Of a stretch of 64,000 bases of DNA, positions 8,755 to 62,724 are shown piece after piece. The translations under genes were made by a program, and so were the position numbers. Below the pieces are notes generated by a model. The model had not been told where the DNA came from. It worked only from the letters and a program-made list of their open reading frames with translations, and ran no database searches. Origin of the DNA: Hyaloraphidium curvatum SAG 235-1 (taxonomy: Eukaryota > Fungi > Monoblepharomycota); assembly GCA_025558095.1 (NCBI GenBank), contig JAIVFI010000003.1, forward strand, positions 1,090,632 through 1,154,631, in the 5' to 3' direction. Each line of letters starts with the position of its first letter. Position 1 is the first letter of the stretch.

Positions 8755-10875
8755 ATGCGGGCCTTTTGGGCCCTCCGAACGCCTCTCATCGGCTCACCGG
8801 CATCTCATCTGCGCGGGCTTTCCGCCCGATGGGCTGCAGCGGAGCCGCGGTCGCCGTTCTGGCCCGGAATCGCGTCGGGGACCTGCGAACGCGGCGCGTC
8901 GCCTCTCTTGCGGTATTCCTCCCCCGCGACGCTCCTGCCGACGCGGTGCTTTTCGTCGGACGTTTTGCGAGGCGAGGATCCCCTAGGGCGGCTGCGGAAG
9001 GTCCTGCAGAGCGCAAGGAGCGGCCGCATCCCGCCCCGCGACGCCGCCGACAGGGTCTGGGAGGCCTATACCGCGCTCGGAAGCGCCCGCGGACTCGACA
9101 GCTACCTTGCCGCGGGTGTGGCACATCATTTGGCCGCCCATGCGGTCCAGGTGCAGGCCAGCCTCCGCGGGAAGGGCAAGGCCGGAAACCGGGACCGCGC
9201 CGAGGCATCGCTGGACCAGGCGGCGGAACGGATGGCTCGTCTTTTCACGGATGTCACCGAAGCTGGCATTGCCATTTCGCCGTTCGCCGTGACCAGATTC
9301 GTCCAGCTGAATGATCGCCACCTGGGGTGACTCGCGAGCGGCTGGGCACCTTGGAGCGAGGAGCTCTGACGTTCCGTGACCGCAGGTCGTACGCGGAATG
9401 CCGGAATGTGGTCGACTTTCTGCGGTTGAGATGCCGCGTCACGCTGACCCAGCGCACGTTGAGCGCGTCGCTGCGCAACGTTGCGCACCGCGGCAACTAC
9501 ACCGCGTTCCTCCGGCTCCTGTACGAGGAGCTGACGGCCAGCCCCGGCATCTCCATCGACGCGTTCATAATCAACCTTTTTCTCAAGGCTGTCGTCGAGG
9601 CGTCGCCATTGACTTAAGAAGACCTGGCAGGGTATCCACGCCGACAGACCTGTGTGGCGGACCTCGCAATCCCGCTGTGGGCTCTGACCAAGGACCAGCC
9701 CATCGTCCGGACTAGGAGCCTTGATCCTCGCGATCTGTATGCTTCGGAGCTGGCTCCAGACCCGGCTTCGTCTCTTCGGGAAGCAATCATGAGCGACCCG
9801 ATCCACGACACCGGTGCGGAAAATCGTGCAGCTTCTGTCGCTCGCGGCCGCTGGCTTTCGGCAGGGTCGGGAGGACGTGCTGAACGACCGCGTCGTCACG
9901 GTGGCTGTCGAAGCCTTCTGCGCTTGGAAGCATCCCAGGTGCGTCCTGGCCACCTCGGAACTGTTGGCAACGCCGCCGTTTCCGATTGCACCCCGTCCCG
10001 CGACATTCAACGTCTTGCTTGCCGATGCGTGCGATCGCCGGGACGCTGTTTCGGGCGAGGCGATCCTCGAGTGCATTCGGCAGGTGGGCTTGAAGCCGGA
10101 TCTGGAGTTGTTCAATACCATGATCCTTTTCTACGGGCGCACGGGGAGGCTCAAGCTTGCAAAGGAGACCCTGAAGGAGATGGTCACCGCAGGCTATAAG
10201 CCCAGCCCGCTGACCGGGATGGCGGTGCTGGAGGGCATCCTCGGGCCGAAGGCGGAGGACGTGGAGCGCGCAATGGACGTGCTCCTATCGGTGGGTATCG
10301 AGGTGTACGTGCAGCACTGGACGAAAGCTCTGCGCTGTTTTGCACAGCAACAGGATTTGTCGGGACTCATGCGGGTTTACGGGGCGATGACGGTGCCGCC
10401 GGATCGCGTAACAGTGTCGTTGATGGCAAAAGCGCTCGCCGATCTTGGGGGTGCGAGACAGATGACCGACTTCCTGAAGAGCGTTCCGCCGCATTTGATT
10501 GGGACATCGGAAACGTGGAGCGCCGCCATCACATCATTTACCAGGGAGTGGGCGTCTTCCGGGGACTTCGTTTTTCGGGACACCGCCTTCGCCCTGTCAT
10601 GTGCGGTGCTGGACCACACACAACTCACCACGGAATCCCTGCCGGCAGCGTTCCGCGAGCTACCTTTCGTGGACATGCACCCGCCCGTCCCCGCACCGGG
10701 GCTCATCCTGGTCATTTTTGTGCTTGCCACGCGGCTTCGCGGGGAGCAGCTGGGAATCATCACGGACAAGGGGAGGGCGTACCTGCGACGGAATGGACAC
10801 GCGGTGCCGGACGATGCGGAAGCACGAACGATGCTCGCGAGGCTTCAGCGGTTAGCAGGGATGCGCGCGGGATGA
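8755..10875 (+). pseudogene. PPR family copy A (pseudogene)
   Basis: Colinear with copies D and E, same intron (9327-9385). Premature TAA at 9615-9617 where paralogs have Ser, and a 44-nt frameshifting deletion at about 9800 relative to copy D. Confidence 0.88.
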
Positions 10876-12009
10876 GACGCCGAGCGACCCTGAACGAACG
10901 GCCTCTAGATCTTCGGCCGCCACAAAATGATCATGCCCTTGCACTGCAATGTAGCCACCCGAATTCATCGAGGAATAAGCACATCGATCCGCTCGGTGCC
11001 CTCATCACGGGCAAGGGCGGAGACTTCCTCGTCCGCATGGGCACATCGTTCCGGACTGTGCGGAAGACATGGTAACGATGCTTAGGCAGTCGGGCAGGCC
11101 GGGCACGAGGATCCTGGGCGTCTCAGACGGAGGCGGGAGCACGGCCGAACCTGATTCCTATAGTACGGACCGGGCGGACCTCGGGCCGTCAATTGAGGCA
11201 TGCAACAGGGCCTGGCGCCGGGAGGGAAGGCCACGAGTAGAGGGCTGGAGGGCAGAGAAGCTGTTCGACATTCCGTAGAAGGGCTGAGCGGTGGAAAACG
11301 GGCCGATCGGTCGCCTCTTTGCCACTTGTGGCATTAGATCATGTTTGGATGCGATGTCCTCGATGACCTGCATAGTCGTCCTATTGGTGGCCCACTAAGA
11401 CCCCCGGCCTTATCGTCTGCTTTCCGTCAGCGGCTTAGCGCTTTGCCACGGGCCCCCAAGGTCCCCTGCGCGGGGGATCTGGCGCGGGGGTCCGTTTGCG
11501 AGTGGGACCCCTGCGCTTGGCGGGCACGCTAAACCGCCAAACACTGTCCCCGCGCACGCACACTCCGCCGGCCGGACCGGGCCACGGGACGACCGGGGTT
11601 TGCTTGCGTGTGCTGTGAAAACCCGGTGCACGGAGTTCCTCGACACCGGTGTGGCCGTCGGTCGTCCGGGGAGGCCGGGGAGGTGACTCGGGCCGCGCAC
11701 GGCGGAGTTGGCCTGCGAGCCCAGACGCCGGCCGGACCGACGCCGGACGGCGCAGATACCTTTTTGAGTGCATGTTAGCCCGTTGCGGGCCACGGCGGTG
11801 CGGCTGGACGGCAGCGGACCGCGGGTGACTGGGTGTCCCACAACAACGGACAACAAGGACAACGCGCCTGGTCAGGCACGGCTACGAGGACTTGGGAGCT
11901 CTCTCTAGCGACTTGGACTGGCCTCTGTTTTTTTTTTGGAGGAGCCTGAGAAGCCGGCCTGCGGCTCGCAGCCACTCCTGGCATAGCCCCATCCTCAGCA
12001 ACTTCCGAC

Positions 12010-13894: not shown

Positions 13895-14069
13895 TGCTGT
13901 ACATTCGACGTGTGGCGCGGGGAAGTGAAGAGAAGTTGTGGAGAGTCGACGTTGGTTCGGGCCGATTGCGAAAAGCCTTCCAACCTTGTCCATTACCCCG
14001 TGCATCCCGTGCATCCTTGTAAGCTACACCCGCGTTCCACCATCCATGACGATCCATTTGTAGTATCCC

Positions 14070-22992: not shown

Positions 22993-24225
22993 CTATCTCC
23001 GGCGCTGGCGGGGTCTCGAGCCTGGCAAGGATAGCTTAACGGTTGCCAGCATCGCTCGCGCATCGGCGCCGTCCGGCACGCGGTGCCCGTTCCGAACAAG
23101 GTAGCCCCTCCCCTTCTCCGTGATGATCTGCCCTCGCTCGCCTCGCAATCTTGTGGCAAGGTCGAAAATGACCAGCATGAGACCGGCCTCCGGGATGGGT
23201 GGACGCAGCCCCACGAAAGGGAACTCCTCGCGCAAAGCAGCTGGCAGGGCCTCCGCCTTGACAGGTACCTGATCCAGCACAGCGCACGAGAGCCCGAAAG
23301 CAGCGTCCCGAGAATCGAGGTCCCCATCGGAACCCCAACCCCACTGCCTTGAAAAAGCCGAGATAACCGCGCTCCAAGTCGACGACTGCCCCAGGAGGTC
23401 CTGCGGAATGTCCTTCAGAAACTCCAGTAGCTGGCTGGCGTTCCCGAAATCGGCGTAGGCCTTCACCATGAGGGTCACTGCGATGTCGTCCGGCGGTACG
23501 GACATCGCTTTCCAGACCCGAACCAGGCCCGCAAAGTCCCCATGTTGACGGAAGTGACGGAGCGCAGTCGTCCAATGAGCAACGTCCACTACGACACCTG
23601 AAGATGCAAGCACCGCCATTGTCTCCTCCAACTTTTCCACGGTTGTCTGCGTTGACAAAATCTCCCCCAGGAGCAGCAATGTGGTCACCCTATCGGGCTT
23701 AAAACCGGCGGCGTCCATCTCCTGCAACGTCTCCTTAACACGATCAAGCCTTCCCGCCATTCCGTGGAACCCAATCATGCTGGTGAACAAAAATTTGTCC
23801 GGTTTCACACACCATAGTCGCATCTTCTCCAGAACAGCGTCTCCTGCCTCCGGGTCCTGGCTGCGGCACGCATCCGCAAGGAGCGGGGTAAAACTCTGTG
23901 CAACGGGCTCCAGAGCAAATGGTTCCGAAGTGAAGAGCTCTAGCGAGGCGCGGGCGCATCGGCGGTGCTTCCAGGCAGCGAACGCTTCGATGGCCGCCGC
24001 GACTACATGGCTGTCGAGCACGTCCTGCCGACCGCGACAAAAGCCCGCGGCGGTGTACGATAGAAGTTGCACGATCTTCCGTGCCGGCGACAGCGAACCG
24101 ACCGGCATCCCCGGCCGGCACAGGTCCAGAATGCTCGGCGCCACCCCGTCCATGACTGCGTGGCGGAGAGCCGACGTCGGGTTTGGCGCCGCTTCCAGAG
24201 AATCCAGATCACGGGGATCAAGAGC
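22993..24225 (-). pseudogene. PPR family copy B (3' half only, divergent)
   Basis: Homology to the other copies starts abruptly at LDPRDLDSLE and covers all PPR motifs and the C-terminus. Exon 1 and the start of exon 2 are missing. Confidence 0.85.
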
Positions 24226-24245
24226 AATGGAAGCTGACCGTGCAG

Positions 24246-24758
24246 GGGAGCTGGCTGCTCGTCCTCCCGAAAGGGGACGGCGACCCCAGCGGCACACTGC
24301 CCTCCCTCCGCGAGCTGTCGCTCGGCCTGCAGAGCCCGATCCCGGTCGTGACCGAGGACCAGACCTCCCACATCCTGATGCAGCGGTTTTTTGCCGCTCG
24401 TTCCCGGCCCGGTGCGCGCCCCCTGCTCGGCCGCGTCGTCGTGGACGCCTGCATCGAGTGGGACGTGCACGGTGCCGAGGCGCGCGCCGCGACCGACAAC
24501 TTTGCAGCGCGAAGGACGGGGAACGGCTGCCCGCCTCCCGAGCTGGCGCTTCGGGTCGCGAGGAGGGGCAAGGCCGACCGGGCGCCGGACGGAAGCTGGG
24601 AGATCGACGTCCGGCCGCGCGGTCCGTTGGACACGGACCCCGAGCCCGTGGCTGTGCCGGAAGGTGAAGAGCAGGACGACATGGGCTGGGTGGACACGGT
24701 GGTGGCGGATGACGATGAACACTTTGCGGCGGAGACGTGGGTTGCGGCAGGCAACTGA
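24246..24758 (+). pseudogene. Orphan terminal exon of a decapitated gene (possibly LRR/F-box-like)
   Basis: Preceded by a branch point and acceptor (gCTGACcgtgCAG, ending 24245) but no upstream exon. Reads GSWLLVLPKG...LPSLRELSL...acidic tail, stop at 24758. Confidence 0.5.
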
Positions 24759-24803
24759 TACTTCATTCGTATTCGACCAACGTGACTATCCTCCGTGTCC
24801 CCA

Positions 24804-25915: not shown

Positions 25916-26895
25916 ATGAGAGCGCGTTTAGCTCTACAAGGCGTGGCTTGGCGGAACTGCTCGCCCGCTGTTCGGACGGACAGGCGGGACGAGCGCTCCC
26001 AGTCCACGCAGGACATCGTTGCGCCTGTCCTGCCGACGCGATTCTTCGCTTCGAATGTGCCGCGAGGCGAAGATTCCAGGGGCCGGCTCCTGAAGGTCCT
26101 GGAGAGCGCGACGGACGGCCGAATCGCGCCCCGGGACGTTGCAGATCGGGTCTGGGAGGCCTACTCCGCGCTCGGATCTGTCCAGGGACTCGACGAACGG
26201 GCTGTTTGGAGCATCGTGGACCACGTGACTGCCCGTGCGGTCAAGGAACAGGCAAGGCTACGGCACAAAGGAAACCAGTCGCCGCCCGGGCACCGTAAAG
26301 CCACAGACGTCCTGCTCGACACGGCATCGGAACGGGTGGAACGCGTTCTAGCCTATGCTACCGATGCCGGTGTTCTCATTTTCAGTGCTCCTGCCACCCG
26401 GTACATTCAAGTGAAGGATCACCGCCTGGGGTGGGTTGCGAAGGCGGTTCCATTCAGCTGCTTCAGCTCACGCGGAGTGTCACCAGCTCTTACGCAGAGT
26501 GTCGGAAGGTGGCCGATTTCCTGCGGGCGAAGTGCCGCATGACTCTGAATGAGAAGAACCTGTGCGCGTTGGTGCGCAGCCTGGCACAGCGTTTCTTGCG
26601 GCTACTACACGAGGAACTGATCGCGAACCCCACGCTCGTGGTGAGCGCCCTCATCTGGAACCTCTGTCTGAAGGTCATCGCGGAGGCGACGCCGTTGTCT
26701 TCGGAGGATCTCGCAGGGTATCCCTGCCGACAGAGCTGCGTCGGCGACCTCGCAGTGCCGCTTTGGGCCTTGAACAAGGAAGAGAAGCTCATCTCTCGCA
26801 CCGCACGTGTGGACTCGCGCGACCTGCATGCTTTGGAATTGGACCCGCTAACCGCTGCCGATCGCAAATCCAACGAGATCGACGGCGGCCCGTGA
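25916..26895 (+). pseudogene. PPR family copy C (5' half only, divergent)
   Basis: Presequence-like exon 1 (PTRFFAS, DRVWEAYSALG, KDHRLG) and intron 26431-26486. Exon 2 homology is lost after DSRDLHALELDP (about 26850), next to the 3' end of the non-LTR element. Confidence 0.85.
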
Positions 26896-27047: not shown

Positions 27048-30000
27048 CTACGCCCCAAGAATCAGCTCCTCATCGACATTCAAACCAAAAGCGACCGGCG
27101 CGGGGGCCGGAGCGTTGACAGCGGCGGCTTCGGTGCACAGCTGAAGCCAGTGTTGGAGTTGGGCCGCGACGCCAAGAGCCCAGGCCACCGCGATCCGTTC
27201 GCGGAAGCGCCGCACAAAACGAGAGTAAAGGCCATCGAGGTCCACGGGCTGCCCATCGCGGCCGACGATCCCGGGATACTGGATGCGCCCCATCTCCGAG
27301 GAGAAGCGCGAGAAAGTGTCAGAGACAGCGCTGTACGAATCAAAAGCAATCACGATCAGAGGGTAGAAGTTGGCGTTGAAGACGAAATGGGAGTAGTCCT
27401 TCCTGGCGGCCTCGACCCGCCGTTCGACTGCGTGGCCCGGGACCGAGAAGACCAGGCCCGTGTGCAAATGGGCCATAGAGGTGAGGGTCTTGATCTCGAG
27501 CAACCACCGTTTCCGGGTTTCGCGGTGCGTGATGAGAACGTCTCCAAGGCGGCCAGCATCCGCAGGCGTGGGCGGGGTGACAGTCTCGTAGCCATGTGCA
27601 AGGAGGTTTGGCGGCATGGGGTGCACGCGGAGGAGCGGGATGGAGCGAAGCGCCGCGCGGATGGCCGCGCAAATGTCGTCGTGACCAGGTCTGAAGAGAT
27701 CCCGGCCATAGCAGCCCGAGAACGCGTGCTCCCCCGTCAGCGACATGGCCGATCGCTTGCATCCCCGCCGGCAGGGCAAGGAAAGACCAGGGTAGTCGGC
27801 CTCGTGCAGGAGCGGGAGGCAAAGCCGGAAGCGTACAAGTAAGCGGAAAAAGTAGTTGCGAATGTGGTTGGCAAGCAGCGCGGGAGAGGCAGTCAGGAAA
27901 GCCGACAGGCCGTCCTGCGCCTGGACGAGCCGCTTGCGGCGCTCCAGACCAGCGGAAGTGTCGGGTTGCAAGGCAATCAGAGCCGCGAGGCGGCGCTGGT
28001 CCTCGAGACGCGTAAGGTCGCTCTGCAGGCCGTGCCAGACCGGCTGAGCGAAGAAACTGGCGTCCGCAGGGAGCGTACGGCGGACGGGCGCGGCGCCCAC
28101 CGGTTGCCCAGCACGCGCAGCCTCGGCGTACGCTGCGGCCGTGTCATCCTCGACACGCTCAAAGGCAGGGCGGAGGGCCTCGATGATGGGAACCAGTTCC
28201 CGCACGTGCTCCACGCCCACACCCCGGGCCGAGGTTCGAAGACCAAGCATGGCGTCCAAGGGGCCCGCCGTGAGGTTGAATGAAGACAGGTAAGCCGCCG
28301 AGGCCACCTTCTCCGATGACAGAAGCCCCATCCCCGAGTAGTGCAGACCCAAGAATACCTGCTCCCGCACAGTCCGACCCTCCACCGACAGCGGATCCAG
28401 ATCCTCGGCCCGATCTCCCAGCAAGCGCAAGAAGGTGGTGAAAAGCGCGTTGTCAAGACGTCGAGCAAAGGGTTGGGTAACCGAGGGGGGGAGAATGCGG
28501 AGCCAAAACGAGAAGAGCTGGGTCACACAGAGACGGAGGAGGGAGTACAGGCCCTGGAGGGAGGGGATGTCGGCCGGCATGGCGTAGCCGAGCGCAGCGC
28601 GCTCGATTTCATCGAGAAGAGCGGCAATGGAGTCGATCTTGGCCGCGAGGAACGACTCCACATAGGCAGGGGTGCCGACCGGGGCACCGACCACCTTGAG
28701 GCCGCACGAGCGAGCGAAGTCAGGCGAGCCCGGGGCCGACGCCGTGGCATGCACCTCGGGGTCGGCCTCGTGAGGCGGGAAGCCAGCGACGCGGATGTTG
28801 TGGGCCGCACCGGCCGCGCGCACCCGCTCCAGCACGGCCGGGTCCGTCGAGAGCGAAAGCAGGTAGCTCTTGTCCGGGCGGTGGGTCATGCCGAGGGAAG
28901 CAAGGCCGTCACGCACCTCTCCCAGGACGGCCATGACCGAGTTGAGCGGCCCGACCACGGTGAGGTCGTCGAGGTACCCAAGGATGAGGCAGTCGGGGTG
29001 CCCAGAGCGGATGGGCCGCAGCATGCGGCTCATGGCGCAGGAGAAGATGGCAGACGACAGCGGGTCGCCCTGGATGTTGCCCTCGTACATGGTGATCCGG
29101 AAAAGGAGCTCCGCCGAGCGCCGGTCGCGGAAGTAGGCGTGGGAAGGGCGCGAGTAAACGAGGTTGTAGTACGGGATAAGCTGAGGCACCTGGCGGACCA
29201 CCTCGCGCGCGAAGAGGCGGCGCAGCGTATTGAAGGCGTTCCTAGAGTCGACCTTCATGACGACGTGGTCGGGGAAGGCCGCCAGCCACGCATTCACCGC
29301 GTGGGCGGTCGCCTCCGCGCCCCCGTCCACCCCGTGACCCAGGTCCTCCTGCTGTTGGAGCTTCCTCAGAAGAGCCTTGTGCCGCACGGCCAGGTACGAG
29401 CCCGCGAGCCGCGTGATGCCCTCCATAATGCCAATCGGCCGGAGCCCCCCCTCCGGCTTGAGCAGAGGGACGAGGATTTGATCCGTGAGGAGCGGCCGGA
29501 GCATGGGGGTGTCGAGTCGGCCAGTGCACACGCCGTGCACCATGGCCGCCAGCGGGCGGAGCTTCCGCCGCGTCGCGTCGTTCTCGCAGTTGTGCACGAT
29601 GAAAAGTTTGGCCATGCTGAAACCCGACATGCCGGCCCCCACGCCGTCCTTCTTCCGGCGCAACCTGGCCCAGATGTCCTCCAGGAAAGCCGCGTCCGTG
29701 TAGGCAGGGCAGGGCGCGGGCGCGTTGGGGGGCAGAGACAGCCGACACAGCGGCTCTCCCTCCCGCGGCCCCGGGTACAGCTCCTCCAGTTCCGCCTGCA
29801 GCGTGGGCGTGAAGCCAGCCGGCACGGCCTCCCCCGAGAGGGCCGCGGACGCAGCACCAGGAGCGCCCTTCAAGGCGGCAAGCACGATGGCCTTGAAGAG
29901 CTGGTAGTTGAGCGGCCGCAGCCCGTCCCGCCGCGCGCCCCGGTTGACCTGACGGGCGGCGAAGTAGTTCTGCTCGTACATGTAGTCCCCCGACATGACG

Positions 30001-30959
30001 TAGCCGCCAAAAGCAAGGTAGGCGGTGAGAGTGCGGTGCAGGTCAGTTTCCGGTGCCGCCGGGTCCTCGTAGGCCCGTTGGAAAGACTCGCTGGCCCGGA
30101 AGGCGAGCGTGCTCCAGGTGGTGGTCCGGTAGCGGTGCTTCAGCGGCTCCGGCGGCGGCGCCCCCGCGCCCCCGCCCGGCGGCGGATCAGGCCCGGGACC
30201 CCCGGGTGGACCACCGTCGCCCGGGTCGCCCGGATCACCGCCGTTGCCGTGCCCGCCAGCCGCGGCGTTGCCGCCCGGCGCGCCGTCGCCGCCTGGGGGA
30301 TCACCGCCGTCCGGGGCGGCACGCGCCGCCGCCGCCGCCGCCGCCAGCGCCGCCCGTTGCGCCTGGCCGTCCTGCGGGGCGTCGGCCGCAACCCGGGCGG
30401 CCGCAAGGGCCGCCAGCAGCGCGGGCGCGGGTGGCGAAGCACGGGGAGATGCCGACGATGCCGCCGGTGACGCCGGTCCCTCCGCGCGTCCCGTAGCAGC
30501 CGCCCGCGCGGCACGCACGCGGTCGAGGAACTCGACGAGATCGGGTGGAAGCGAAGCTAAAGAGACGCCGAGTGGCGGGTTAGCTGCGTCCGGGTTGCAC
30601 GAGGTGTGCTGTCCAGAAACACCGGCACCAGAGGCGTTTGCGGCGTAGGGACGCCGGCAACCCCCGCACCGCGCTAGCCCCATGGCGCGCAACGCATCGG
30701 CAGACAGGCGCTGCATCGCCAACCAGTGCTCCGGGCTCCGTGTGACCCGAAGATGACCGTCCCGTTTGTTTTTGTTTGGAGTTGGCTGGAAGCGGCAACC
30801 ATCAACCGGGCACGCATGGAGGCCGGGTTCAGCAGGCGCCTCCGCCATCGGCACATCGCCGTCGATGCAAGATTGGTGATGATGAGATAGAGCTCCGATG
30901 TTGGCGAAAGCTGCCGCGCAGCCGTGGCAGCTGTAAGGCAGGAGCGGCGTGCGGCTCAT
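27048..30959 (-). mobile_element. Non-LTR retrotransposon ORF (zinc fingers, RT, CCHC, restriction-like endonuclease), CRE/Cnl1/MoTeR-like
   Basis: Intronless 1303-aa ORF. N-terminal C2H2-like fingers; RT motifs LLKPEGGLRPIGI, KVDSRNAFN, QGDPLS, YLDD and GLKVVGAPVG; CRRGC..HAFSGC knuckle; RPGHD, RLGDVLI and LEIKT (PD-D/ExK type). Confidence 0.92.
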
Positions 30960-32627: not shown

Positions 32628-32673
32628 TTTCGAGTGCTGGGTGAGGACTTGACACAAGCCCCGCGGACGACGA

Positions 32674-33012: not shown

Positions 33013-35173
33013 ATGCACGTTCGCCGGCGACTATTCTGCCTCTTTCGCGATGCCGCGGTCTTTCCAGGGCAAGTGCCTCGTGCGCCCGGGCCCGGGTCTC
33101 ATTCCTGGTTGCCGTGTGCACGCGCCGCCGGGTCACGGACGGAGGAACGCGCCTGCGGCGGCCGCGTGCCGCCTCTTCCGGGTGTTGCCTCTCTCGTACC
33201 GAAACGGTGCTTTTCTTCCAATATGCCGCATGGGAGCGACCCGAAGGAACGGCTGCTGAACGTCCTCGAGAGCGCATCGAGCGGCCGGATCGCGCCTAGG
33301 CAGGCTGCGGACAGGGTCTGGGAGGCCTATACCGCGCTCGGAACCGCCCGCGGACTCGAGAGCTACCTCGTTGCGGGCGTGGCACATCATTTGGCCGCCC
33401 ATGCGGTCCAGGTGCAGGCCAGCCTCCGCGGGAAGGGCAGGGCCGGAAACCGGGACCACGCCGATGCCTCGCTGGACCAGGCGGCGGAACGGATGGTTCG
33501 GCTTCTCGCGGACGCCACCGAAGCAGGCATTGCCATCTCGTCGTCTGCCGTGACGAGATTCGTCCAGCTTAAGGATCGCCACCTGGGGTAGGTCGCGGAA
33601 GGGCAGGCTACTCTCGGGCTTTCTGAAGATCCTTGTGCCCAGGTCGTACGCGGAGTGCCGGAAGGTCGTCGACTTTCTGCGGTTGAAGTGCCGTGTCACG
33701 CTGAACCATCTCATGTTAAGCGCGTTGCTGCGCAACGTCGCCCACCGCGGCAACTACACCGCGTTCCTCCGGCTCCTGTACGAGGAGCTGACGGCCAGCC
33801 CCGGCATCTCCATCGACGGGTTCATAATCAATCTTTTTCTCAAGGCGGTCGTCGAGGCGTCACCCCTGACGTCGGAGGATTTGGCAGAGTATGCGCGCCG
33901 ACAGACCTGCGTGGCGGACCTCGCAATCCCGCTGTGGGCTCTGACGAAGAACGAGCCCTTCGCTCGGACTAGAAGCCTTGATCCTCGCGATCTGGATGCT
34001 TTGGAGCTGGCTCCAGACCCTGCTTCGGCTCTTCGGGAAGCAATCGTGAGCGGCCCGGCGCCCAGCATCCTCGACCTCTGCCGCCCGACGATACCGGCTG
34101 GATCCACGACACCGGTGCGGAAGATTGTGCAGCTTCTGTCGCTCGCGGCCGCTGGCTTTCGGCAGGGTCGGGAGGACGTGCTGGACGGCCACGTCGTCGT
34201 GGCGGCTGTCGAAGCCTTCTGCGCTTGGAAGCACCCCAGGTGCGCACTGGCCACCTCGGAATTCTTCACAATGGCGCCATTTCCTATTGCGCCCCGTCCC
34301 CAGACGTTCAACATCTTGCTTGCCGATGCCTGCGATCGCCGGGACGCCGTTTCGGGCGACGCGATCCTCGAGCGCATTCGGCAGGTGGGCTTGAAGCCGG
34401 ATCTGGAGTTGTTCAATACCATGATCCTTTTCTACGGGCGCACGGGGAGGCTCAAGCTTGCAAAGGAGACCCTGAAGGAGATGGTCACCGCAGGCTATAA
34501 GCCCAGCCCGCTGACCGGGATGGCGGTGCTGGAGGGCATTCTCGGGCCAAAGGCGACGGTCGAGGACGTGGAGCGCGCAATGGACGCGCTCACATCGGTG
34601 GGTATCGACGTGGATGCGCCCAACTGGAACAAGGCTCTCCGGCACTTCGCGCAGCAGCGGGATCTGCAAGGGCTCATGCGGGTTTACGGGTTGATGACGG
34701 TGCAGCCAAGTCCCGTAACGGTGTCCTTGGTGGCAAAGGCGCTCGCGGATCTTGGGGATACGGGCCAGATGATCGACTTCCTGATCAGCGTTCCACCGCA
34801 TCTGGTCGGAAGATCCGCAACTTGGAGCGCCGCCATAACAGCCTTCGCAAGGCGGTGGACATCTTCCGGGGACTCGATTTGTCGGGACGCTGCCTTTGCT
34901 CTCTCGTGTGCCGCGGTGGACCACACACCACCGAGCAAGGAATCACTGCCGGCATCAGTCCGCGAGCTACCTTTCGTTGGCATGCGCCCGCCCGTCCCAG
35001 AATTCGGCCTCATGCTGGTCATTTTTGAGCTTGCCACGCGGCTTCGTGGGGAGCAGCTGCGAATCATCACAGACAAGGGGAGGGCGTACCTGCAACGGAA
35101 TGGGCATGCGCTGCCGGACGGTGCGGATGCACGGACAATGCTCGCGAGGCTTAGGCGGTCTCTATTGCGCTGA
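33013..35173 (+). CDS. PPR family copy D (intact, about 701 aa, putative mitochondrial PPR protein)
   Basis: Arg-rich N-terminus ending KRCFSS. Intron 33588-33642. Tandem PPR motifs at 34298-34711, e.g. PQTFNILLADACDRRDAVSGDAILERIRQVGLKPD and LELFNTMILFYGRTGRLKLAKETLKEMVTAGYKPS. Confidence 0.88.
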
Positions 35174-35489
35174 GCTCCGACGGCGGACGGCCCCGTTCGT
35201 GGCCGCAAAAAGCGCCTTGATATCTACGTCTCCACCGTTGGAAACGGCCTCGAAGACACGAATATATCAATTATTAGCACGTCGATCCGGGTCGCCTGCC
35301 CTCCTTTACGCCTTTGCATTTGTCCTTGTGTATCAGTACCCAGGATGGGTCTTCACGCCCCCGGGGAGGGTTGATAAGCGCCGGAAAGGGCGTTCCTGGC
35401 TCGGTCCATGCGACTTTCGAGAGCGGCATTTCTCGCCCGCGGGAGCTTTCCCCCGCGTCCTTGAACAGTTTGGTCGTCAGCGCGAGGGC

Positions 35490-35935
35490 AAAGCAGGCCA
35501 GGGCGGCTTGACAGGCGCCTGTCGACACGCTCATTCTCGCAGGATAGAGAGGCATGGAAAGGTGCTGTTCCTCGCGAGGAAGCTTACAGGCACTTTCCAG
35601 GACGAGGCCGGACAGAATGCACGCTGCATCCGGAAAGAAGAAGCAGCGTGGACTCATGCTGTTCTTCGAAACGAAGGTGGAGCGCTCGAGCGCTTGGGCG
35701 AAGCTGGCCAGGGCGGCTTGACAGGGCCGGAATGCAAGCTCCATTCGGAATGAAAAGGAAGCGTGGAATCATGCTGTTCCGCGCGACGAAGCTTCCCGGC
35801 GTCTGTCAAGGGCGTGCGTCCCCGGCGGAGCGTTCTAGAGCTCGGGCGAAGCTACCCAGGGCGGCTTGACAGGCGCCGGAATGCAAGCTCCATTCCGAAT
35901 GAAAAAGAAGCGGGGCAACATGATGTTCCGCGCAG
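35490..35935. repeat. Degenerate tandem repeat (3-4 units of about 100-200 bp)
   Basis: CAGGGCGGCTTGACAGG recurs at about 35499, 35709 and 35857. GAATGCA(A/C)GCT recurs at about 35615, 35730 and 35879. Confidence 0.7.
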
Positions 35936-37341: not shown

Positions 37342-39551
37342 TCAGTAACGACCGACCCCGCCCGCCTTTTTCCCCACCCTTGGTCCACTCCTCCTTCCCG
37401 CCTCGGCCTGGAGTATTGCATGCATCGCCCTCGCGTCCGCGCCACCCCAAACCGCGTATCCGTTCCGAACCAGATAGGCCCGCCCTTTGTCCGTCAGCAT
37501 CTGCAGCTGCTCCCCCTGTAGCCGCGTGGCCAGATCGAATATCACCAGCGTGAGCCCCGCTTCAGGGACGGGCGGGCGCATGTCCACGAAAGGTAGCTCG
37601 CGGAGGGCTGTCGGCAGGGATTCCTTGGTGAGTTGTGCGTGGTCCAGCGCCGCACATGACAGGGCGAAGGCGGCGTCCCGAAAAACAAAGTCCCCGGACG
37701 ACGCCCACTCCCTGGCGAATGATGCGATGGCAGTGCTCCAGGTTGCGGATATCCCGATCAAATGCGGCGGAACGCTCTTCAGGAAGTCGATCATCTGGCT
37801 CGTGCCCCCAAGATCGGCGAGCGCCTTTGCCATCAACGACACGGTCACCTCGTTTGGTGGCACGGTCATCGACCCGTAAACCCGCATGAGCCCTTGCAGA
37901 TCCTGTTGCTGTGCAAAACAGCGCAGCGCTTTCGTCCAGTGGTGCACGTCCACGTCGATGCCTACCGAGGCAAGCACCTTCATGGCGTGCCCCACGTCCT
38001 CGACCGTCGCGTTCGGCCCGAGGATGCCCTCCAGCACCGCCATCCCGGTCACCGCGTTGGGCTTGTAGCCTGCGGCGACCATCTCCTTCAGGGTCTCCTT
38101 TCCCAGCTCGAGCCCCCCCGTGCGCCCGTAGAAAAGGATCATGGTAGTGAACAACTCCAGATTCGGCTTCACGCCCAGCTGCCGCATGCGCTTGAGGATC
38201 GCCTCGCCCGAAACAGCGTCCCGGCGATCGCAGGCGTCGGTAAGCAAGACGTTGAATGTGTCGGGACGGGGCGGAATCGGAAACGGCGCGGTTGAGAAGA
38301 GTTCCGAGGTGGCCAGGGCGCACCTGGGGTGCTTCCAAGCGCAGAAGGCTTCGACAGCCCCAGTGACGACGTGGCCGTCCAGCACGTCCTCCCGACCCTG
38401 CCGAAAGCCAGCGGCAGCGAGCGACAGAAGCTGCACAATCTTCCGCACCGGTGTCGTGGATCCAGCTGGCATCGCCGGGCGGCAGAGTTCGCGAATGTCC
38501 GGCGCCGGGCCACTCATGATTGCTTCCCGAAGAGCCGAAGCCGGGTCTGGAGCCGATTCCGAAGCATCCAGATCGCGAGGATCAAGGATCGCAGTCCGGA
38601 CGACGCGCTGGTCCTTCGTCACAGCCCAGAGCGGGATCGCGAGGTCGGCCACGCTGCCCTGTCGGCGCGGATACTCCGCCAGATCCTCCGACGTCAGGGG
38701 CGAAGCTTTAGCGACGGCAGCCAGATAGAGGTTGAGGATGTACGAGTGCACAACTAGGTCGGGATTGGCCGTCAGCTCTTCGTGGAGGAGCTTGAGGAAA
38801 GCCGTGTAGTTGCCGCGGTGCGCCACGTTGCGCAGCAACGCGCTCAACAGGTGCTTGTTCAGCGCGACGCGGCACCTCAACCGCAGAAAGTCGACCACCT
38901 TCCGGCATTCCGCGTACGACCTGCGGACACGGAACGTCAGAGGTCCTCGCTCCGAGGTGCGCGGGCGCTCGCGACTCACCCCAGGTGGCGATCCTTCAGC
39001 TGGACGAATCTGGTCACGGCGGGCGGCGAAATGTCGATGCCAGCTTCGGTAGCATCCGCGAAAAGCTGAACCATCCGCTCCGCCGCCTGGTCCAGCGAGG
39101 CCCAGGCGCGTTCCCGGTGCCCTGTCCTGCCCTTGCCCCGCAACCCGGCCTGCTGCTCAACCGCATGGGATGCCAAATGATGTGCCACACCCGCAACGAG
39201 GTAGCTGTCGAGTCCGCGGGCGGTTCCGAGCGCGGTATAGGCCTCCCAGACCCTGTCCGCGGCCTGGTGCGGAGGGATCCGCCCGTTCTTCGCGATCTGC
39301 AGGACCTCTCTCAACCGTCCTAGGGGATCGCTCCCTCGAGAAACACCGGAAGAGAAGCACCGCGTCGAGAGGAGGGCCGGGGACGAGGCCAGGGGCGGCA
39401 CGCGAGGGCGGACGCGTTCCGCCTTCCGTGACCAGGCGGCGCGTGCAGACGGCGCCCAGGCAGGAAGTCCGGGCTCGGTCGCCAGAGCCACATGCCCTCG
39501 AACCGTCAAGGGATAGTTCAAGAGGCGGAATAGACGCCGGTGGCCTTGCAT
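37342..39551 (-). CDS. PPR family copy E (intact, about 716 aa)
   Basis: MQGHRRLFRLL...TRCFSS presequence, intron 38921-38979, complete PPR array. The extreme C-terminus differs from the other copies. Confidence 0.88.
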
Positions 39552-44952: not shown

Positions 44953-46320
44953 ATGGCCGACAAGGCGCCCGCCCCGGCTTCCGACGCGCGGCTGTCAGCG
45001 CTCGAGGCGCGCGTCGACGCGCTGCACGCCGAGGGCGACCGCCGCCGCCGCTGGGGAACGCGCATCGCGGCCGTCGGCATTCTCGCGTGGATAATCGCGG
45101 CGGCAATCGCTGGTACTGTTTTCACCCATTGCAATAACTGCGATTCGGTGCTGATTGTGCCGGCAGACTTCGGCGCGCCGTCGGGCTCCGATGTGGCGGC
45201 GGCCGGCAGCAGCGAGGCGGCCGTCGTGTGGTTCCTCCCGGCCATCCTGGCCAAGGGCGGCAAAGGCGGCAAGAAGAAGCCCAAGGAGCCCAAGCAGCCC
45301 CCGCCCGGCGACGGTGGCGGCGGCAAGACGTGCAAGAAGGCGCCCGTCGAGGGCTCCGAGAACGGCGAACCCGACTTCCTGGTGCGTCGTCCTTGCAGCG
45401 CGTGATCGTGCGCATCCGACTCATTTGTGTGCCGTTAGAACACCGTTTCCGGCCTCAAGTACCCCGGCGAGCCCGGCAAGGGCTACCCCGGCTACCCCGG
45501 TGCACCCGGCGGCGGCTACCCGGGCGCTCCGGGCGGCGGCCAGCCCGGCAACCCGGGAGGCGGCTACCCTGGCTACCCTGGCAACCCCGGCGGCGGCTAT
45601 CCCGGTCAGCCCGGCCAGCCCGGTCAGCCCGGCCAGCCTGGCAACCCCTACCCAGGCCAACCTGGTCAGCCCGGGCAACCCGGGCAACCCGGGCAACCCG
45701 GCAACCCGTACCCCGGCCAACCCGGTCAACCCGGCCAGCCCGGCGGCGGGTACCCCGGCCCCCCCACCGACCCCTCGCCCCCTTACACCGTGATCGCCAA
45801 CGGCACCGGCCACGAGATCCGCCTCTACAGGAACCTCACCCTCGCCACAGTCTCGCTCCCCGGCGGCTCGGTCGTCTATCCGCCCGGCGACGCGGTGGGC
45901 AAGCTTACGGCTTACTGGTACGGCGCCAACAACGACACCGAGACGGGCGAGTGCTGGCTGCTCCCCGCCACCTCGCCCTTGTTCTCGTCCAAGAAGAAGG
46001 CCGGCGACGACGCGACGCAGGTCCGCCGCCCGCTCCCGCAGGGCCTGCCCCGCGTCCCCGTGCCCACCGACGCCGAGATATCCGTCGGGACGGTGGCCAA
46101 GTGGAAGGCCGCCGTGGCGCCCATCCCGGGGTACTGGGTGACCCCCGACGCGTTCGAGGAGGCCGAGGCCGAGCTGAGGGGCAGGATCGGGAAGGGGTTC
46201 GAGGCGGTGGGCAGCGCGTGGCTGGCGAGGTACGGGTACGGGACGAGGAGCGAGGTGTTCCTGCCCGTGAAGAAGGTCAAGAAGGGCAGGGGAGGCAAGG
46301 GGGAGGAGGACGACGAGTAA
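44953..46320 (+). CDS. Membrane-anchored protein with G/P/Q/Y repeat linker and C-terminal SOUL heme-binding-like domain
   Basis: TM helix near the N-terminus, PGGGYPG and PGQPGNPY repeats, then [33 protein letters not shown] and ARY...RSEVFLPV, resembling SOUL motifs. Confidence 0.68.
45459..45760 (+). repeat. Coding tandem repeats ([15 protein letters not shown])
   Basis: Repeated cccggc/cccggt-cag/caa and ggcggctac units. Confidence 0.85.
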
Positions 46321-46371
46321 CGGGGGCCCGGGGCCAAGATTTGGATGGGGAATAGACGGACCCTACACCGT

Positions 46372-49225: not shown

Positions 49226-50913
49226 ATGCACGTCCGCCGGCGACTATTCTGCCTCTTTCGCGATGCCCCGGTATTTCCGGGCCACGTGGCTCGTGCGCCC
49301 GGGCCCGGATTTCCTGCCTGGGCGCCGTCTGCACGCGCCGTCGGGTCACGGACGGCAGAACGTGTCGCCCGGTGCCTACTGCCGGCTCTGCCCCGGAATG
49401 CCCCCTCTCGGGCCCCCTCGCCTACGCGATGCTTTTCTTCCGGTGTTCCTCGAGTGGAAGATCCCCTAGGACGGCTCCGGAAGGTTCTGCAGAGCGCAGG
49501 GAGCGGCCGGATCCCGCCCCGTCGCGCCGCCGACAGGGTCTGGGAGGCCTATTCCGCGCTCGGATCCGCCCGGGGACTGGACAGCTACACGATTGGAGGC
49601 GTGGCACGTCATTTGGCGGCCCATGCCGTGGAGCTTCAGGCCGGGTTGCGGGGCAACGCGGGGTCAGGACACCGGGACCGCGCCTGGGCCTCGCTGGACC
49701 AGGCTTCGGAGCGGATGGCCCGGCTCTTCGTGGATGCCACCGAAGCTGGCATTGCCATTACGCCGTCCGCCGTGACGAGATTCGTCCAGCTGAAGGATCG
49801 CCACCTGGGGTGAGTAGAGAGAGGCGGGGCACCTTGGAGCCAGGAGCTCTGACGTTCTGTGTCGGCAGGCCGTACGCGGAATGCCGGAGGGTGGTCGACG
49901 TTCTGCATTTGAGGTTCCGCGTCACGCCGAACCAGCGCACGTTGAGCGCGTTGCTGCGCAACGTTGCGCACCGCGGCAATTACACCGCGTTCCTCCGGCT
50001 CCTCTATGAGGAGCTGACCGGGAATCCCGATCTAGTTGTGCACTCGTACATCCTCAACCTCTATCTGGCTGCCGTCGCTAAAGCTTCGCCCCTGACGTCG
50101 GAGGATCTGGCGGAGTATCCGCGCCGACAGGGCAGCGTGGCCGACCTCGCGATCCCGCTGTGGGCTCTGACGAAGGACCAACCCGTGGTCCGGACTGCGA
50201 GCCTGTATTCTCGCGATCTGGATGCTTCAGAACTGTCTCCAGACCCGGCTTCGGCTCTTCGGGAAGCAATCGTGAGCGGCCCGGCGCCCAACATCCTCGA
50301 CCTCTGCCGCCCCGCTATGCCTTCTGGATCCACGACACCGGTGCGGAAGATCGTGCAGCTTCTGTCGCTCGCTGCCGCTGGCTTTCGGCAGGGTCGGGAG
50401 GACGTTTTGGACGGCCGTAGTGTCACCGAGGCTGTCGTAGCCTTCTGCGCTTGGAAGCACCCCAGGTGCGCCCTGGCCACCTCGGAACTCTTTGCTACCG
50501 CGCCGTTTTCGATCCCGCCCCTTCCCGCGACATTCAACGTCTTGCTTGCTGATGCCTGCGATCGTAGGGACGCCGTTTCGGGCGAGGCGATCCTCGAGCG
50601 CATGCGGCAACGGGGCGTTAAGCCTCATCTGGAGATGTTCAATACCATTATCCTCTTCTACGGGACCACGGAATCCCTGCCGACAGCCCTCCGCGAGCTA
50701 CCTTTCGTGGGCATGCGCCCGCCCGTCCCCGAACCGGGTCTCACGCTGGTCATTTTCGACCTCGCCACGCGGCTTCGCGGGGAGCAGCTGCGGATCATCT
50801 CGGACAAGGGCAGGGGCTACCTCATCAGGAGCGGGTACCGCGTTCCTGACTGCGCCAACGCCCGGGAGATGCTGGCGATGCTCCTGCGGTCTGCAGCACG
50901 CACGCGGGGTTAG
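49226..50913 (+). pseudogene. PPR family copy F (open frame, but about 165 codons of the PPR array deleted)
   Basis: Intron 49810-49868. ...IILFYG joins directly to TTESLP at about 50664, whereas copy G has about 165 aa between these points. Confidence 0.85.
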
Positions 50914-51057
50914 TTCGCGCCGCGGGGTGACGCGAGCGACCCTGAACGAATCGTCTCTCGATCCTCGGCCGTCGGAAAATGACCCTGCTTTTGAATTGCA
51001 ATGTAGCCACCCGAATACATCGAGGAATAAACACGTCAATCCGCTCGCTGCCCTCCT

Positions 51058-58903: not shown

Positions 58904-59228
58904 GGGGTTCGGGGGGGGAGGCAAGGGGACGCGGGGGACATGCACGGGATGGGCGGATGAACGATCGTAGGGAGAGAGCGTAGCTAGTCAGGGGTAAATC
59001 GACTTGGGTGAGATGCGGACGGTCGGAGCTGCGAACGTACCCGTCGAAATCGCCCCGGACTGAATCCAGGTAGACGCCCAGCTAGCCAGTTTTGCTTGCG
59101 CCGCCATACAGGCCCGCCTCGAAGTGACGTTGCGGACGGCGGGCGCGGGTCAGACAGACCCTGACGGACCCCACCCTGAATCCCCGCTCCCCGTCTCCCG
59201 CCCGCGAAACCGACAAGACAGCAACAGG

Positions 59229-59600
59229 ATGGCCGAAGCCGCCGCCGTACGTGCCGCACCCGCTTGCTCTGCGCGGCCGCTGACGGATCGCAGGAAACCG
59301 CCGCGCCCGCCGCCGTCGACCCCGCCGCGCCCGCCGTTCCCGCCGTTCCCGACGCCGCGGGGTGCGAACGCCGCTGTCGATCGGGCGCGCACTGCCGGCT
59401 GACGCCATCCCGCCGACAGCGCCGCCAAGCCCGCCGGCTCGGACTCGGAGTCGAGCGGCAGCGGCAGCGACAGCGACAAGGACGACCCGGAGAAGGCGGC
59501 AAAGAAGGCCGCAAAGAAGGCGGAGAAGGAGGCCAAGAAGGCCGCCAAGAAGGAGGGCAAGGAGAAGAAGGACAAGGGGGAGAAGGACAAGAAGAAGTGA
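59229..59600 (+). CDS. Small low-complexity Ala/Lys-rich protein (3 exons)
   Basis: MAEAAA|ETAAPAAVDPAAPAVPAVPDAA|..SDSESSGSGSDSDKDDPEKAAKKAAKKAEKEAKK...KDKKK*. Confidence 0.6.
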
Positions 59601-59857
59601 GGAGGCGTCGGCGGAAGGGGTGGCACGGGCGGGGCGCGCGTCAGCGCGCATCGTGTAGGGCGTGCCGCCACGCCACTATAGCCCTCAGACGGCACATGCA
59701 CTGTGCACGAGCGATTCTGGTGTACAAAGCGGCCTGCCCGTTGGCGGCCCGCAAGGACGTTCGGTTCTCCCGCTTCTATTTCTCTACCCGCGCTCGCGCA
59801 ACAATCCAGGGCATCCGACTCTCCCGCACCGCACACCGTCTCCGTTTCCGGTGATGG

Positions 59858-61096
59858 TCAGCCGAGCGGCACCGGGTTGATCGGCGGTTCCCCCCTCGCG
59901 GCCGCCAACACCTCCCTCGCCACGCCCTCCGCTGTCCTGGGCAGCGTGCCCTCGCCCGACCACGCCACGTGCGGCGTCATCCATACCCGGTCGGGGTGGT
60001 ATTTCCACAGCGGGGAGTAGGTCGACGGGGGCTCGTCGGGGTCGTGCACGTCCAGGGCGGCGCCGGAGATGTTGGAAGAGTCGAGGGCGCGGAGGAGGGC
60101 GGGCGTGGAGATGAGCGCGCCGCGGCTAGAGGGAAAAAGGTCAGCGGGAGAGGAAGGACCCGGAAAACGGGTCGGACGTACCCAACGTTGATGACGTATG
60201 CCCCCTTTTTGAGCATCCCCAGCACGGCGTCGTCCACCACCTCCCGCGTGCCCTCGGTCAGTGGCGCAGCGCACACCAGAAAGTCCACCTCCCCGAGCAC
60301 CTCGGGCACCTTCCAATCTCGGTCCCCAAACACATTTTCGACGTGCGGCACCGCCCCGGGCGTCTGCTTCGAGCCCCACACCCGCATCCCGAATCCGGCG
60401 GCGCACCGCCGCGCGACCTCGGCGCCGATGCTCCCCAGCCCGATCACAAAGACGGTGCGGCCGAGGAGCTCGGACATTTCCATCTGGCGGGACTTGCCCT
60501 TCCAGAAGTCGGTGCGCTCGCGGACGTCGAGGGGTTCGGGAGAATAGGGGTCGGGGGCGGGGCCGGAGGGGTCGGGGGCGGGGAGGGAGAGGTAGTGCCG
60601 CGCGAGCTTGGCCTTGGCGAGCATGAACTTTGGGCGCAGAAGGTGTGCCGGTTAGCAGTTCGTCCAGGAGCGCGTGTCGTCCCCGCACCATTAGGACGAA
60701 CTCGGCGATGGGCGCCGCGTTGGCGCCCCTCGCATTCGTCAAAATGACGTCCCTCTGGTTCCCCTTTCGCAGATAATTGGCGGTCATGACGTGTTCGAGG
60801 CCGACCTGCGCGATGTGCACGCGGCGGACGTGCGGGAACGCGTCCAGAACCGCATCGACCGTCTCGGCGGGCCGCACGTTGGCCGACCCGGAAAAGGGCC
60901 CCACAAACAGCTGCGCCTTATCGGCGAGCTCGCGCTGCGAGTCGTCTTCCAGGGAGACGCGCGGCGGGCCGTGCGACGGATAGTCCACTTTGAGCACGAC
61001 GGGCAGCACGCCGCGGGGCGTGCCGGTCGCGCCGAACAGCACGCGGCCCACGATCGGCAGGCAGAGGAACGGGATGCGCGTCTCGGCGGCGGCCAT
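59858..61096 (-). CDS. D-isomer-specific 2-hydroxyacid dehydrogenase
   Basis: LTNARGANAAPIAEF, VIGLGSIG, APLTEGT, INV|RG, GAALDVH and MTPHVAW; two introns. Confidence 0.92.
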   Translation of the reverse strand: MAAAETRIPFLCLPIVGRVLFGATGTPRGVLPVVLKVDYPSHGPPRVSLEDDSQRELADKAQLFVGPFSGSANVRPAETVDAVLDAFPHVRRVHIAQVGLEHVMTANYLRKGNQRDVILTNARGANAAPIAEFVLMVRGRHALLDELLTGTPSAPKVHARQGQARAALPLPPRPRPLRPRPRPLFSRTPRRPRAHRLLEGQVPPDGNVRAPRPHRLCDRAGEHRRRGRAAVRRRIRDAGVGLEADARGGAARRKCVWGPRLEGARGARGGGLSGVRCATDRGHAGGGGRRRAGDAQKGGIRHQRWVRPTRFPGPSSPADLFPSSRGALISTPALLRALDSSNISGAALDVHDPDEPPSTYSPLWKYHPDRVWMTPHVAWSGEGTLPRTAEGVAREVLAAARGEPPINPVPLG

Positions 61097-61488
61097 CGCG
61101 CGGGATGCGGGGAGGTTTCGGGCGAGCGGTTGGGAGTCGGGCCGATCGAAGATCGCGCCACGTACCGGCACGGGCAGGATCCTGCCTCAAGGTCGCTACC
61201 GGACTAGGACCCCGAATGCATTTCTATCGGATGGTTTGATGGTGAACAGGTTCAAGGAGGCCTGTACTCGGTAGCTCGGTGGACATCTAACCTCTCCCCT
61301 CTTTCCCCGAATATGGCGTGACGTGATGTATCAGGGTTGGGGGGCGCGCAACGCCTGTGATACAGATCTGATGAGCGCTCGATGTATTCGGGTGGCTACA
61401 GCGCAGTGCCGAAGCCGGGTCATTTTCCGACGGCCGAGGATCGAGAGGCGGTTCATTCAAGGTCGCGCGCGTCACCCCGCGGCGCGAA

Positions 61489-62724
61489 CTAACCCTGCGT
61501 GCGTGCTGCAGACCGCAGGAGCATCGCCAGCATCTCCCGGGCGTTGGCGCCGTCAGGAACGCGGTACCCGCTCCTGATGAGGTAGCCCCTGCCCTTGTCC
61601 GAGATGATCCGCAGCTGCTCCCCGCGAAGCCGCGTGGCGAGGTCGAAAATGACCAGCGTGAGCCCCGGTTCGGGGACGGGCGGGCGCAAGTCCACGAAAG
61701 GTAGCTCGCGGAGGGCTGTCGGCAGGGATTCCGTGGTCAGCTGTGCGTGGTCCAGCGCCGCACATGACAGGGCGAAGGCGGTGTCCCGGAAAACAAAGTC
61801 CCCGGAAGACGCCCACTCCCTAGCGAATGATGCGATGGCGGTGCTCCACGTTGGCGATGTCCCAATCAAATGCGGCGGAACGCTCTTCAGGAAGTCGATC
61901 ATCTGGCTCGTGCCCCAAAGATTGGCGACCGCCTTGGCCACCAGTGCCACGGTCACCTCGTTTGGAGGCACGGTCATAACACGATAAAGGCGCATGAGCC
62001 CTTGCAGATCCCGCTGCTTCGCGAAATGCCGGAGGGCCTTGTCCCAGTGCTGCACGTTCACCTCGATACCTGCCGAGGCAAGCACCTTCATTGCGTGCTC
62101 CACCACCTCGACCGTCACCTTCGGCCTGAGGATGCCCTCCAGCAGCGCCATCCCAGTCACCGCGGTTGGTTTGTGGCCCGCGCCAGCCATCTCCTTCAGG
62201 GTCTCCCTCGCCAGCTCGAGCCACCCCGTGCGCCCGTAGAAAAGGATAATGATATTGAACATCTCCAGATGCGGCTTCCCCCCCCGTTGCCGCATGCGCT
62301 TGAGGATCGCCTCGCCCGAAACGGCGTCCCTACGATCGCAGGCATCAGCAAGCAAGACGTTGAATGTCGCGGGAAGGGGCGGGATCGAAAACGGCGCGGT
62401 AGCAAAGAGTTCCGAGGTGGCCAGGGCGCACCTGGGGTGCTTCCAAGCGCAGAAGGCTACGACAGCCTCGGTGACACTACGGCCGTCCAAAACGTCCTCC
62501 CGACCCTGCCGAAAGCCAGCGGCAGCGAGCAACAGAAGCTGCACGATCTTCCGCACCGGTGTCGTGGATCCAGAAGGCATAGCGGGGCGGCAGAGGTCGA
62601 GGATGTTGGGCGCCGGGCCGCTCACGATTGCTTCCCGAAGAGCCGAAGCCGGGTCTGGAGCCAGCTCCAAAGCATCCAGATCGCAAGGATCAAGCCACAG
62701 CCCGATCGCGAGGTCCGCCACGCA
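61489..62724 (-). pseudogene. PPR family copy G (5'-truncated by LTR insertion)
   Basis: Near-identical to copy F where they overlap. Starts at CVADLAI directly against the LTR edge at 62725, and has a 13-codon deletion before LDP. Confidence 0.88.

Follow-up and report, generated by a model that had tools for sequence, protein, structure and literature searches.

Why should the end of a fungal chromosome carry the same gene, intact or in ruins, six or seven times over, and what is that gene for? The question is raised by the final 64 kb of contig C3 (1,154,631 bp) in the assembly of Hyaloraphidium curvatum SAG 235-1 (31.9 Mb in 55 contigs). Within this stretch of 64,000 nucleotides, hereafter the window, six or seven copies of a pentatricopeptide repeat (PPR) gene are found inside 54 kb, in the terminal 55 kb of the chromosome. 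Fungal PPR genes are usually few and single-copy, and clustered, fast-evolving PPR genes with hypervariable recognition residues have been taken as a sign of conflict between nucleus and mitochondrion in flowering plants. A first-pass annotation, made from the letters of the window, had described the copies (A to G) as a subtelomeric birth-and-death family of putative mitochondrial PPR genes resembling the restorer-of-fertility-like (RFL) genes of plants. Our analysis makes it likely that they belong to a lineage-specific nuclear family of mitochondrion-targeted P-type PPR proteins, which grows and decays in the distal regions of the chromosomes.

When both exons of copy D are used as tblastn queries, the seven homologous pieces of the first-pass annotation are all found, with E-values of 1e-28 to 0: A at 8926-10851 (+), B at 23026-24225 (-), C at 26018-26886 (+), D at 33013-35170 (+), E at 37408-39551 (-), F at 49226-50901 (+) and G at 61501-62727 (-). 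Lesions were read from a seven-way DNA alignment and mapped to window coordinates. The alignment agrees that only D and E are intact: both are open from ATG to stop and the four or five other copies are broken, A, B, C, F and G all carrying lesions or being fragments. Copy D (33013-35173, plus strand) consists of exon 1 at 33013-33587, an intron at 33588-33642 and exon 2 at 33643-35173, and encodes 701 aa. Copy E (37342-39551, minus strand; exon 1 39551-38980, intron 38979-38921, exon 2 38920-37342) encodes the 716 aa of database model P0002. The two lie tail-to-tail, their arms being 83% complementary over 1520 nt.

The damage differs from copy to copy. Copy A (8755-10875, plus strand; ATG at 8755, intron at 9327-9385) is a pseudogene with a TAA stop at 9615 and a frameshifting deletion of 44 nt after 9799. 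Copy F (49226-50913, plus strand; intron at 49810-49868) is broken though its frame is open, as an in-frame deletion of 495 nt after 50664 has taken away PPR motifs 2-6 and with them most of the tract. Copy G (61489-62727, minus strand), the last gene before the telomere, is truncated at its 5' side and retains an open reading frame (ORF) of 363 aa (P0004) with a deletion of 39 nt; it is 95-97% identical to F over 50207-51024. Copy C (25916-26895, plus strand) is a 5' fragment made up of exon 1, the intron (26431-26486) and ~120-140 codons from the start of exon 2; it has lost the conserved GNYTA motif to a deletion of 15 nt after 26592. Copy B (22993-24297, minus strand) is a 3' fragment with the PPR tract and the C-terminus, and shares ~57% aa identity with D.

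Fragments B and C may well have a common origin. The homology of B to D opens at 24222, which corresponds to D 33977; the nucleotide homology of C stops at 26837, or D 34005, with a protein-level match reaching 26886. Given that these boundaries meet, that both fragments are equally diverged from the other copies and that they lie 1.7 kb apart on opposed strands, it is fairly likely that they are the halves of one copy split by an inversion, and that the window holds six loci instead of seven.

Copies A, C, D, E and F, which are all those that retain the 5' part, share a GT..AG intron of 55-59 nt located in one and the same codon (RHLG|SYAEC), just as the first-pass annotation had it. Read-through translations place it at the same position in every examined paralogue on the other contigs, and it is also spliced out there in the database models P0002 and P0006 to P0008. 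Since the intron is kept in all copies with a 5' part, duplication must have proceeded at the DNA level, and the DNA-mediated spread proposed earlier is upheld. The flanking strings said to be shared, a 5' one in D and F and a 3' one in A, F and G, reappear in the alignment.

The gene models deposited for these copies deserve a remark of their own. In model P0001 (copy D) an internal Met serves as the start, and ~160 N-terminal residues, including the presequence, are missing. In P0003 (copy A, 577 aa) and P0005 (copy F) extra introns bridge a stop, a frameshift or a divergent stretch. Consequently, broken copies pass as proteins and gene models are unreliable here.

The encoded proteins are recognized as PPR proteins by several means. 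Full-length analyses were based on P0002 (copy E), whereas D was searched exon by exon; the Pfam entries of the PPR superfamily are PF01535, PF13041 and PF13812. Both copies exceed the cut-offs for PPR_2 (30.2 bits for D and 39.4 for E, against 30) and PPR_3 (28.6 and 35.2 bits, against 25), which agrees with the identity assigned before. Of 17 family members, 10 are matched by PPR_2 and 10 by PPR. When a profile of these 17 members is compared with the PDB, designer PPR proteins are found at E = 1e-89 in up to nine matched stretches and maize PPR10 at 3e-47. The AlphaFold2 model of E (mean predicted local distance difference test score, pLDDT, 83.7; predicted template modelling score 0.76) is disordered over residues 1-73 and helical from 76 onwards, and its top Foldseek matches are designer PPR (dPPR) proteins, PPR10 and mitoribosomal PPR proteins (~6e-9). 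The motif register was set by aligning E with dPPR10. It yields motif starts at E 410, 445, 480, 516, 548 and 582, in agreement with the helix pairs of the model, and thereby six canonical motifs at residues 410-617. Judged by profile match and predicted alpha-solenoid fold, the family consists of true P-type PPR proteins.

The N-terminal half is less conventional. Residues 74-405 of E, modelled alone, reach a pLDDT of 91.7, and the best structural matches are again PPR proteins at Z 10-13, a range that is ambiguous for helical repeats, though the list is dominated by PPR. A non-PPR insert at 263-347 is mostly non-helical and confidently modelled. It is here and in the adjoining helices that the most conserved residues of the family are located (GNY, SEDLxGY, ADL and DLCxPxMPxGSxTPVxK).

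Ahead of this module, the first 60 residues contain 6-14 Arg/Lys against 1-3 Asp/Glu (the broken copy C has 6 Asp/Glu). They are followed at residues 64-68 by RCFSS or RYFSS, both in the window copies and in a second cluster on contig C17. The Arg-rich N-termini ending in RCFSS that had been noticed earlier are therefore present, with RYFSS as a variant. The consensus R-x-F/Y-S-S would be compatible with an R-3 type mitochondrial processing site. The composition and the predicted disorder of ~70 residues support a presequence-like N-terminus.

From these elements a working scheme can be drawn. The protein of ~700 aa would begin with a cleavable Arg-rich presequence ending in R-x-F/Y-S-S, to be followed by a module of ~330 residues that appears to be built from degenerate PPR-like helical hairpins and broken by the strongly conserved, predicted non-helical insert of ~85 residues with its motifs GNYTAFL, SEDLxGYP, ADL and DLCxPxMPxGSxTPVxK. 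Six canonical 35-residue PPR motifs and a probable helical C-terminal cap would complete it. Judging from other PPR proteins, the most likely task of each member is to bind a short single-stranded segment of a mitochondrial RNA, and such binding could stabilise the RNA, aid its processing or activate its translation. The family would grow by local DNA-level duplication in distal chromosome regions, its paralogues would swap sequence by gene conversion, and copies would be lost through stops, deletions, truncations and rearrangements.

Similar tendencies are observed in the rest of the genome. A search of the genome returned 43 matching stretches in 12 clusters, which amount to roughly 30 loci, and most PPR_2 matches in the H. 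curvatum genome belong to this family. About 14-16 members look full-length; the rest are truncated, frameshifted or fragmentary. With about half of the family degenerate genome-wide, and two intact copies against four or five broken ones in the window, the birth-and-death turnover suggested by the first-pass annotation is well founded. Ten of the 12 clusters fall in the distal 30% of the half-contig (Kolmogorov-Smirnov p = 5.5e-4), typically at 60-110 kb from the contig end. The window itself is closed by a telomere array, (GGTTA)31.6 or TTAGG repeats, at 63843-63999 on the plus strand. The term subtelomeric is thus justified as far as this telomere and the distal bias are concerned, but it is too narrow for the family as a whole, as most clusters keep the distance mentioned and one lies mid-contig.

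Some details of the telomere and of single members can be added. Among the contigs listed, the array terminates C1 to C5, in each case at the 3' end; a pattern search gave 703 matches, all on the forward strand and none on the reverse. The unit is the pentamer TTAGG, where the usual fungal unit is TTAGGG. The mid-contig member (C20:355133-359014) matches copy E in three successive reading frames and is therefore frameshifted. For a member on C8 (C8:42672-47135) the open frame of 1291 aa also spans a second, partial match downstream. An extra C-terminal domain was considered and rejected, the downstream part being without a Pfam match, and the frame may represent an in-frame tandem partial duplication.

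The family is not purely recent: paralogue identity falls to 21-25%, and a related organism possesses two members. The tree sets the window copies apart from the C17 copies as two well-supported local clades, hence two separate local expansions, and its deep branches are unresolved. The two foreign proteins, from Logan assembly SRR26194948, pair together. They emerged from an exhaustive profile search of 1.84 billion representatives, which gave 24,326 matches. Generic PPR proteins match only profile positions ~215-410, repeatedly, and among the best 150 of the 24,326 matches full-length single-stretch ones come exclusively from H. curvatum and from these two proteins; weaker full-length relatives could sit below the generic PPR matches. 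The SRR26194948 contigs have 53% GC and fungal genes, and the two family members on them lack an intron at the conserved site. The YVC1 protein of this assembly shares 68% identity with its H. curvatum counterpart and resembles nothing else found, which shows that the organism is a relative. No synteny was seen between SRR26194948 and H. curvatum, where the contig carrying YVC1 has no family member. A homologue search with P0019 retrieved P0019 alone, and our literature search encountered no description of this family or of a PPR expansion in chytrids or Hyaloraphidium.

With the exception of the F-G pair, pairs among A, D, E, F and G show a synonymous divergence (dS) of 0.32-0.47 and a ratio of nonsynonymous to synonymous divergence (dN/dS) of 0.39-0.47. 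Values for B and C exceed a dS of 1. Given that D and E are fully open at a dS of 0.39 and a dN/dS of 0.41, purifying selection must have acted since their split. For F versus G the corresponding values are 0.13 and 0.83.

Identity between copies is not uniform but mosaic. Copy A resembles D at 90-98% in some blocks of 150 nt and at 75-80% in others, where E matches instead, and E and F have a 93% block in common. For A-D (twice) and E-F, none of 5000 shuffles produced a run of shared polymorphic sites as long as the observed one (p <= 2e-4), so by this pattern the window copies are mosaics created by gene conversion. The homology between copies ends within ~35-100 bp upstream of the ATG and 0-130 bp past the stop, and the boundaries vary by pair. 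This is most simply explained if the loci have a greater age than their gene bodies suggest: the bodies are alike beside older, diverged flanks because conversion homogenises them.

These boundaries also bear on the possibility that the gene is the cargo of a mobile DNA element, which would account for gene-sized units among unrelated genes in both orientations. The abrupt end of homology close to the ATG and the stop is what such a unit would show. Nonetheless, the boundaries differ between pairs, terminal inverted repeats are not reported around the copies, and the conversion tracts already explain why similar bodies stand beside diverged flanks. We rejected transport by a mobile element on the variable boundaries and the lack of terminal repeats, and regard it as highly improbable.

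The two intact copies have canonical code pairs in motifs 1, 2 and 4, namely N/D, N/S and N/S for D and N/N, T/N and T/N for E. In motif 1 they differ at the last position, in motifs 2 and 4 at both positions of the code. Variability was compared over motifs 1-6 in the two young clades (window and C17). At position 5 and the last position the mean pairwise aa difference is 0.41, against 0.19 elsewhere (Mann-Whitney p = 5e-4, permutation p = 0.002). When all 35 motif positions are ranked, the last comes first (0.52), followed by 2 (0.50), 32 (0.39) and 5 (0.38). For the 17 codons that encode positions 2, 5 and last, the nonsynonymous diversity (pN) amounts to 0.24-0.30 against 0.08-0.14 in the remaining tract, a difference of two- to threefold, and the ratio to synonymous diversity (pN/pS) to 0.5-1.4 against 0.3-0.4. 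The base-reading residues (5, 35 and 2) are thus among the four most variable positions in young paralogues, and new copies therefore probably differ in RNA specificity. The excess of change at positions 35, 2 and 5 is present, but falls short of proof of positive selection.

A comparison with known systems helps to place the family. The RFL proteins of plants are P-class and consist almost wholly of 15-20 PPR motifs, with no extra domains; their genes occur in clusters, recombine between paralogues and are most diverse at the base-recognising residues (PMC5075784). The family of H. curvatum shares the probable mitochondrial P-type character, the clustering (in the window, and a second time on C17), the exchange of sequence, the many truncated or dead copies and the peak of diversity at motif positions 5 and 35, and also at 2. 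On the other hand, it is fungal, has six canonical motifs behind a conserved, family-specific N-terminal module of ~330 residues with a non-helical insert, contains one conserved intron and has no known sterility-type target. Common descent is not evident beyond the PPR repeat itself, as profile matches outside the family, to generic PPR proteins, are confined to the repeat tract (profile positions ~215-410). The resemblance to RFL genes that had been put forward therefore holds for the clusters, the conversion mosaics and the variable positions 35, 2 and 5, but not for the architecture of the protein: the family behaves like the RFL clade and is not a member of it.

Fungal comparisons lead elsewhere. 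By language-model features the nearest proteins are mitochondrial PPR clusters of Dikarya, including Complex I intermediate-associated protein 84 (CIA84), with scores of 0.95-0.97 and 194-208 shared features; this likeness is no more than a lead. Similarities are the length (about 650-820 aa) and the small number of Pfam-detectable PPR motifs in a longer helical protein. These proteins of Dikarya are single-copy in their genomes, unlike the ~30 loci and rapid turnover seen here. The yeast stabilisers and activators Pet309, Aep3 and Rmd9 may offer a functional parallel, with one helical-repeat protein likely serving one mitochondrial RNA in either case. The structural matches include Aep3 and Rmd9 at Z 8.4-9.8, a range that is common for helical repeats. 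Outside the PPR motifs there is no sequence homology with the family, and genes of this yeast type are not known to be clustered or multi-copy.

Several observations weigh against a mitochondrion-targeted family whose young members diversify at their RNA contacts. We infer mitochondrial import from the composition, the motif and the rule that PPR proteins are organellar. A COX1 search of the H. curvatum genome found nothing, the mitochondrial DNA (mtDNA) being absent from the assembly, and six motifs would specify a sequence too short for target prediction. The variability test drew on five copies from the window, three of them pseudogenes, and the pN/pS given above, based on only 17 codons, is not clearly above 1 and could reflect relaxed constraint on exposed residues. 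Finally, telomere repeats were not found at the starts of contigs C17 and C8, so that the distance of the family there is one to the contig end, which may not equal the chromosome end.

Given the pN/pS and the many dead copies, it might be argued that no adaptive process is involved. A few old members would then do the housekeeping, and the copies in the window and on C17 would be redundant duplicates in decay, thrown up by ectopic recombination in subtelomeres; we judge this unlikely. Four or five of the six or seven window copies are broken, the dN/dS of F versus G is high, and a retroelement and a shared end repeat (see below) sit at two breakpoints. In this case the extra variability at positions 2, 5 and 35 would, with a similarly low probability, mean weak constraint on exposed residues, in line with a pN/pS that is near 1 and not well above it at the recognition codons. 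Yet D and E have been kept open under purifying selection, and drift in pseudogenes would spread changes evenly, whereas the variability is concentrated at three of the 35 motif positions.

The opposite view, that the family is an independently evolved counterpart of the RFL repertoire, with turnover driven by an arms race against selfish mitochondrial ORFs, mobile introns, plasmid-like DNA or mitoviruses, seems to us rather improbable; and it is just as doubtful that new paralogues were selected to bind and silence the RNAs of such selfish elements. Clustering, recombination between paralogues and peak diversity at the base-recognising residues do match the RFL features (PMC5075784), and many copies are dead. 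The mtDNA of H. curvatum, moreover, is said to be a linear genome with tRNA editing, going by the title of Forget et al. 2002 in the reference list of PMC6131824. With this mtDNA missing from the assembly, however, a role against selfish elements is purely hypothetical. The modest pN/pS again does not favour it, only six canonical motifs plus a conserved extra module set the proteins apart from RFL proteins, and the deep paralogues are old and mostly intact, which rather fits housekeeping roles. A lineage-specific family of mitochondrial P-type PPR proteins, growing and decaying in distal regions, therefore remains our preferred explanation.

Clusters, conversion, dead copies and change at positions 35, 2 and 5 are now seen together in a fungus, and a monoblepharid family of ~30 loci with this pattern suggests that genes can evolve in this way independently of male sterility in plants. 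With its linear mtDNA of about 30 kb, H. curvatum would make a small test case for the drivers of PPR diversification. If the conflict with selfish elements were true, the RNA-reading residues would diversify so as to follow shifting mitochondrial targets, and the family would amount to a nuclear defence of the mitochondrial transcriptome outside plants, in an early-diverging fungus.

The genes that separate the PPR copies are unrelated to them, as had been stated before: Pfam scans of long ORFs identify a GH9 glycosidase, a CorA-like transporter, a Zn2Cys6 factor and a 2-hydroxyacid dehydrogenase. The GC content of the window lies between 62 and 77% in steps of 2 kb. An ORF of 1303 aa at 27048-30959 on the minus strand contains a reverse-transcriptase domain (RVT_1, 5.5e-10) and is assigned to a retroelement; it begins ~150-210 bp past the broken end of C. 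Exactly where G is truncated, a repeat of 228 nt begins (62724-62951, no strand assigned). Its sequence recurs with 96% identity on contig C5, ~0.5-0.7 kb before the telomeric end, and a longer stretch has a counterpart of 78% identity near the end of contig C2. This may represent a subtelomeric repeat common to these ends or one terminus of a mobile element.

Two further repeats were observed in the window. The ORF at 45228-46355 (+), for which no Pfam match was obtained, contains degenerate tandem repeats of 9 to 33 nt at 45456-45773 that code for a stretch rich in Gly, Pro, Tyr and Gln (GYPG and QPG units). Just downstream of D, at 35479-35933, three or four degenerate direct repeats of ~100 nt with 70-87% identity lie in the spacer that separates D from E.

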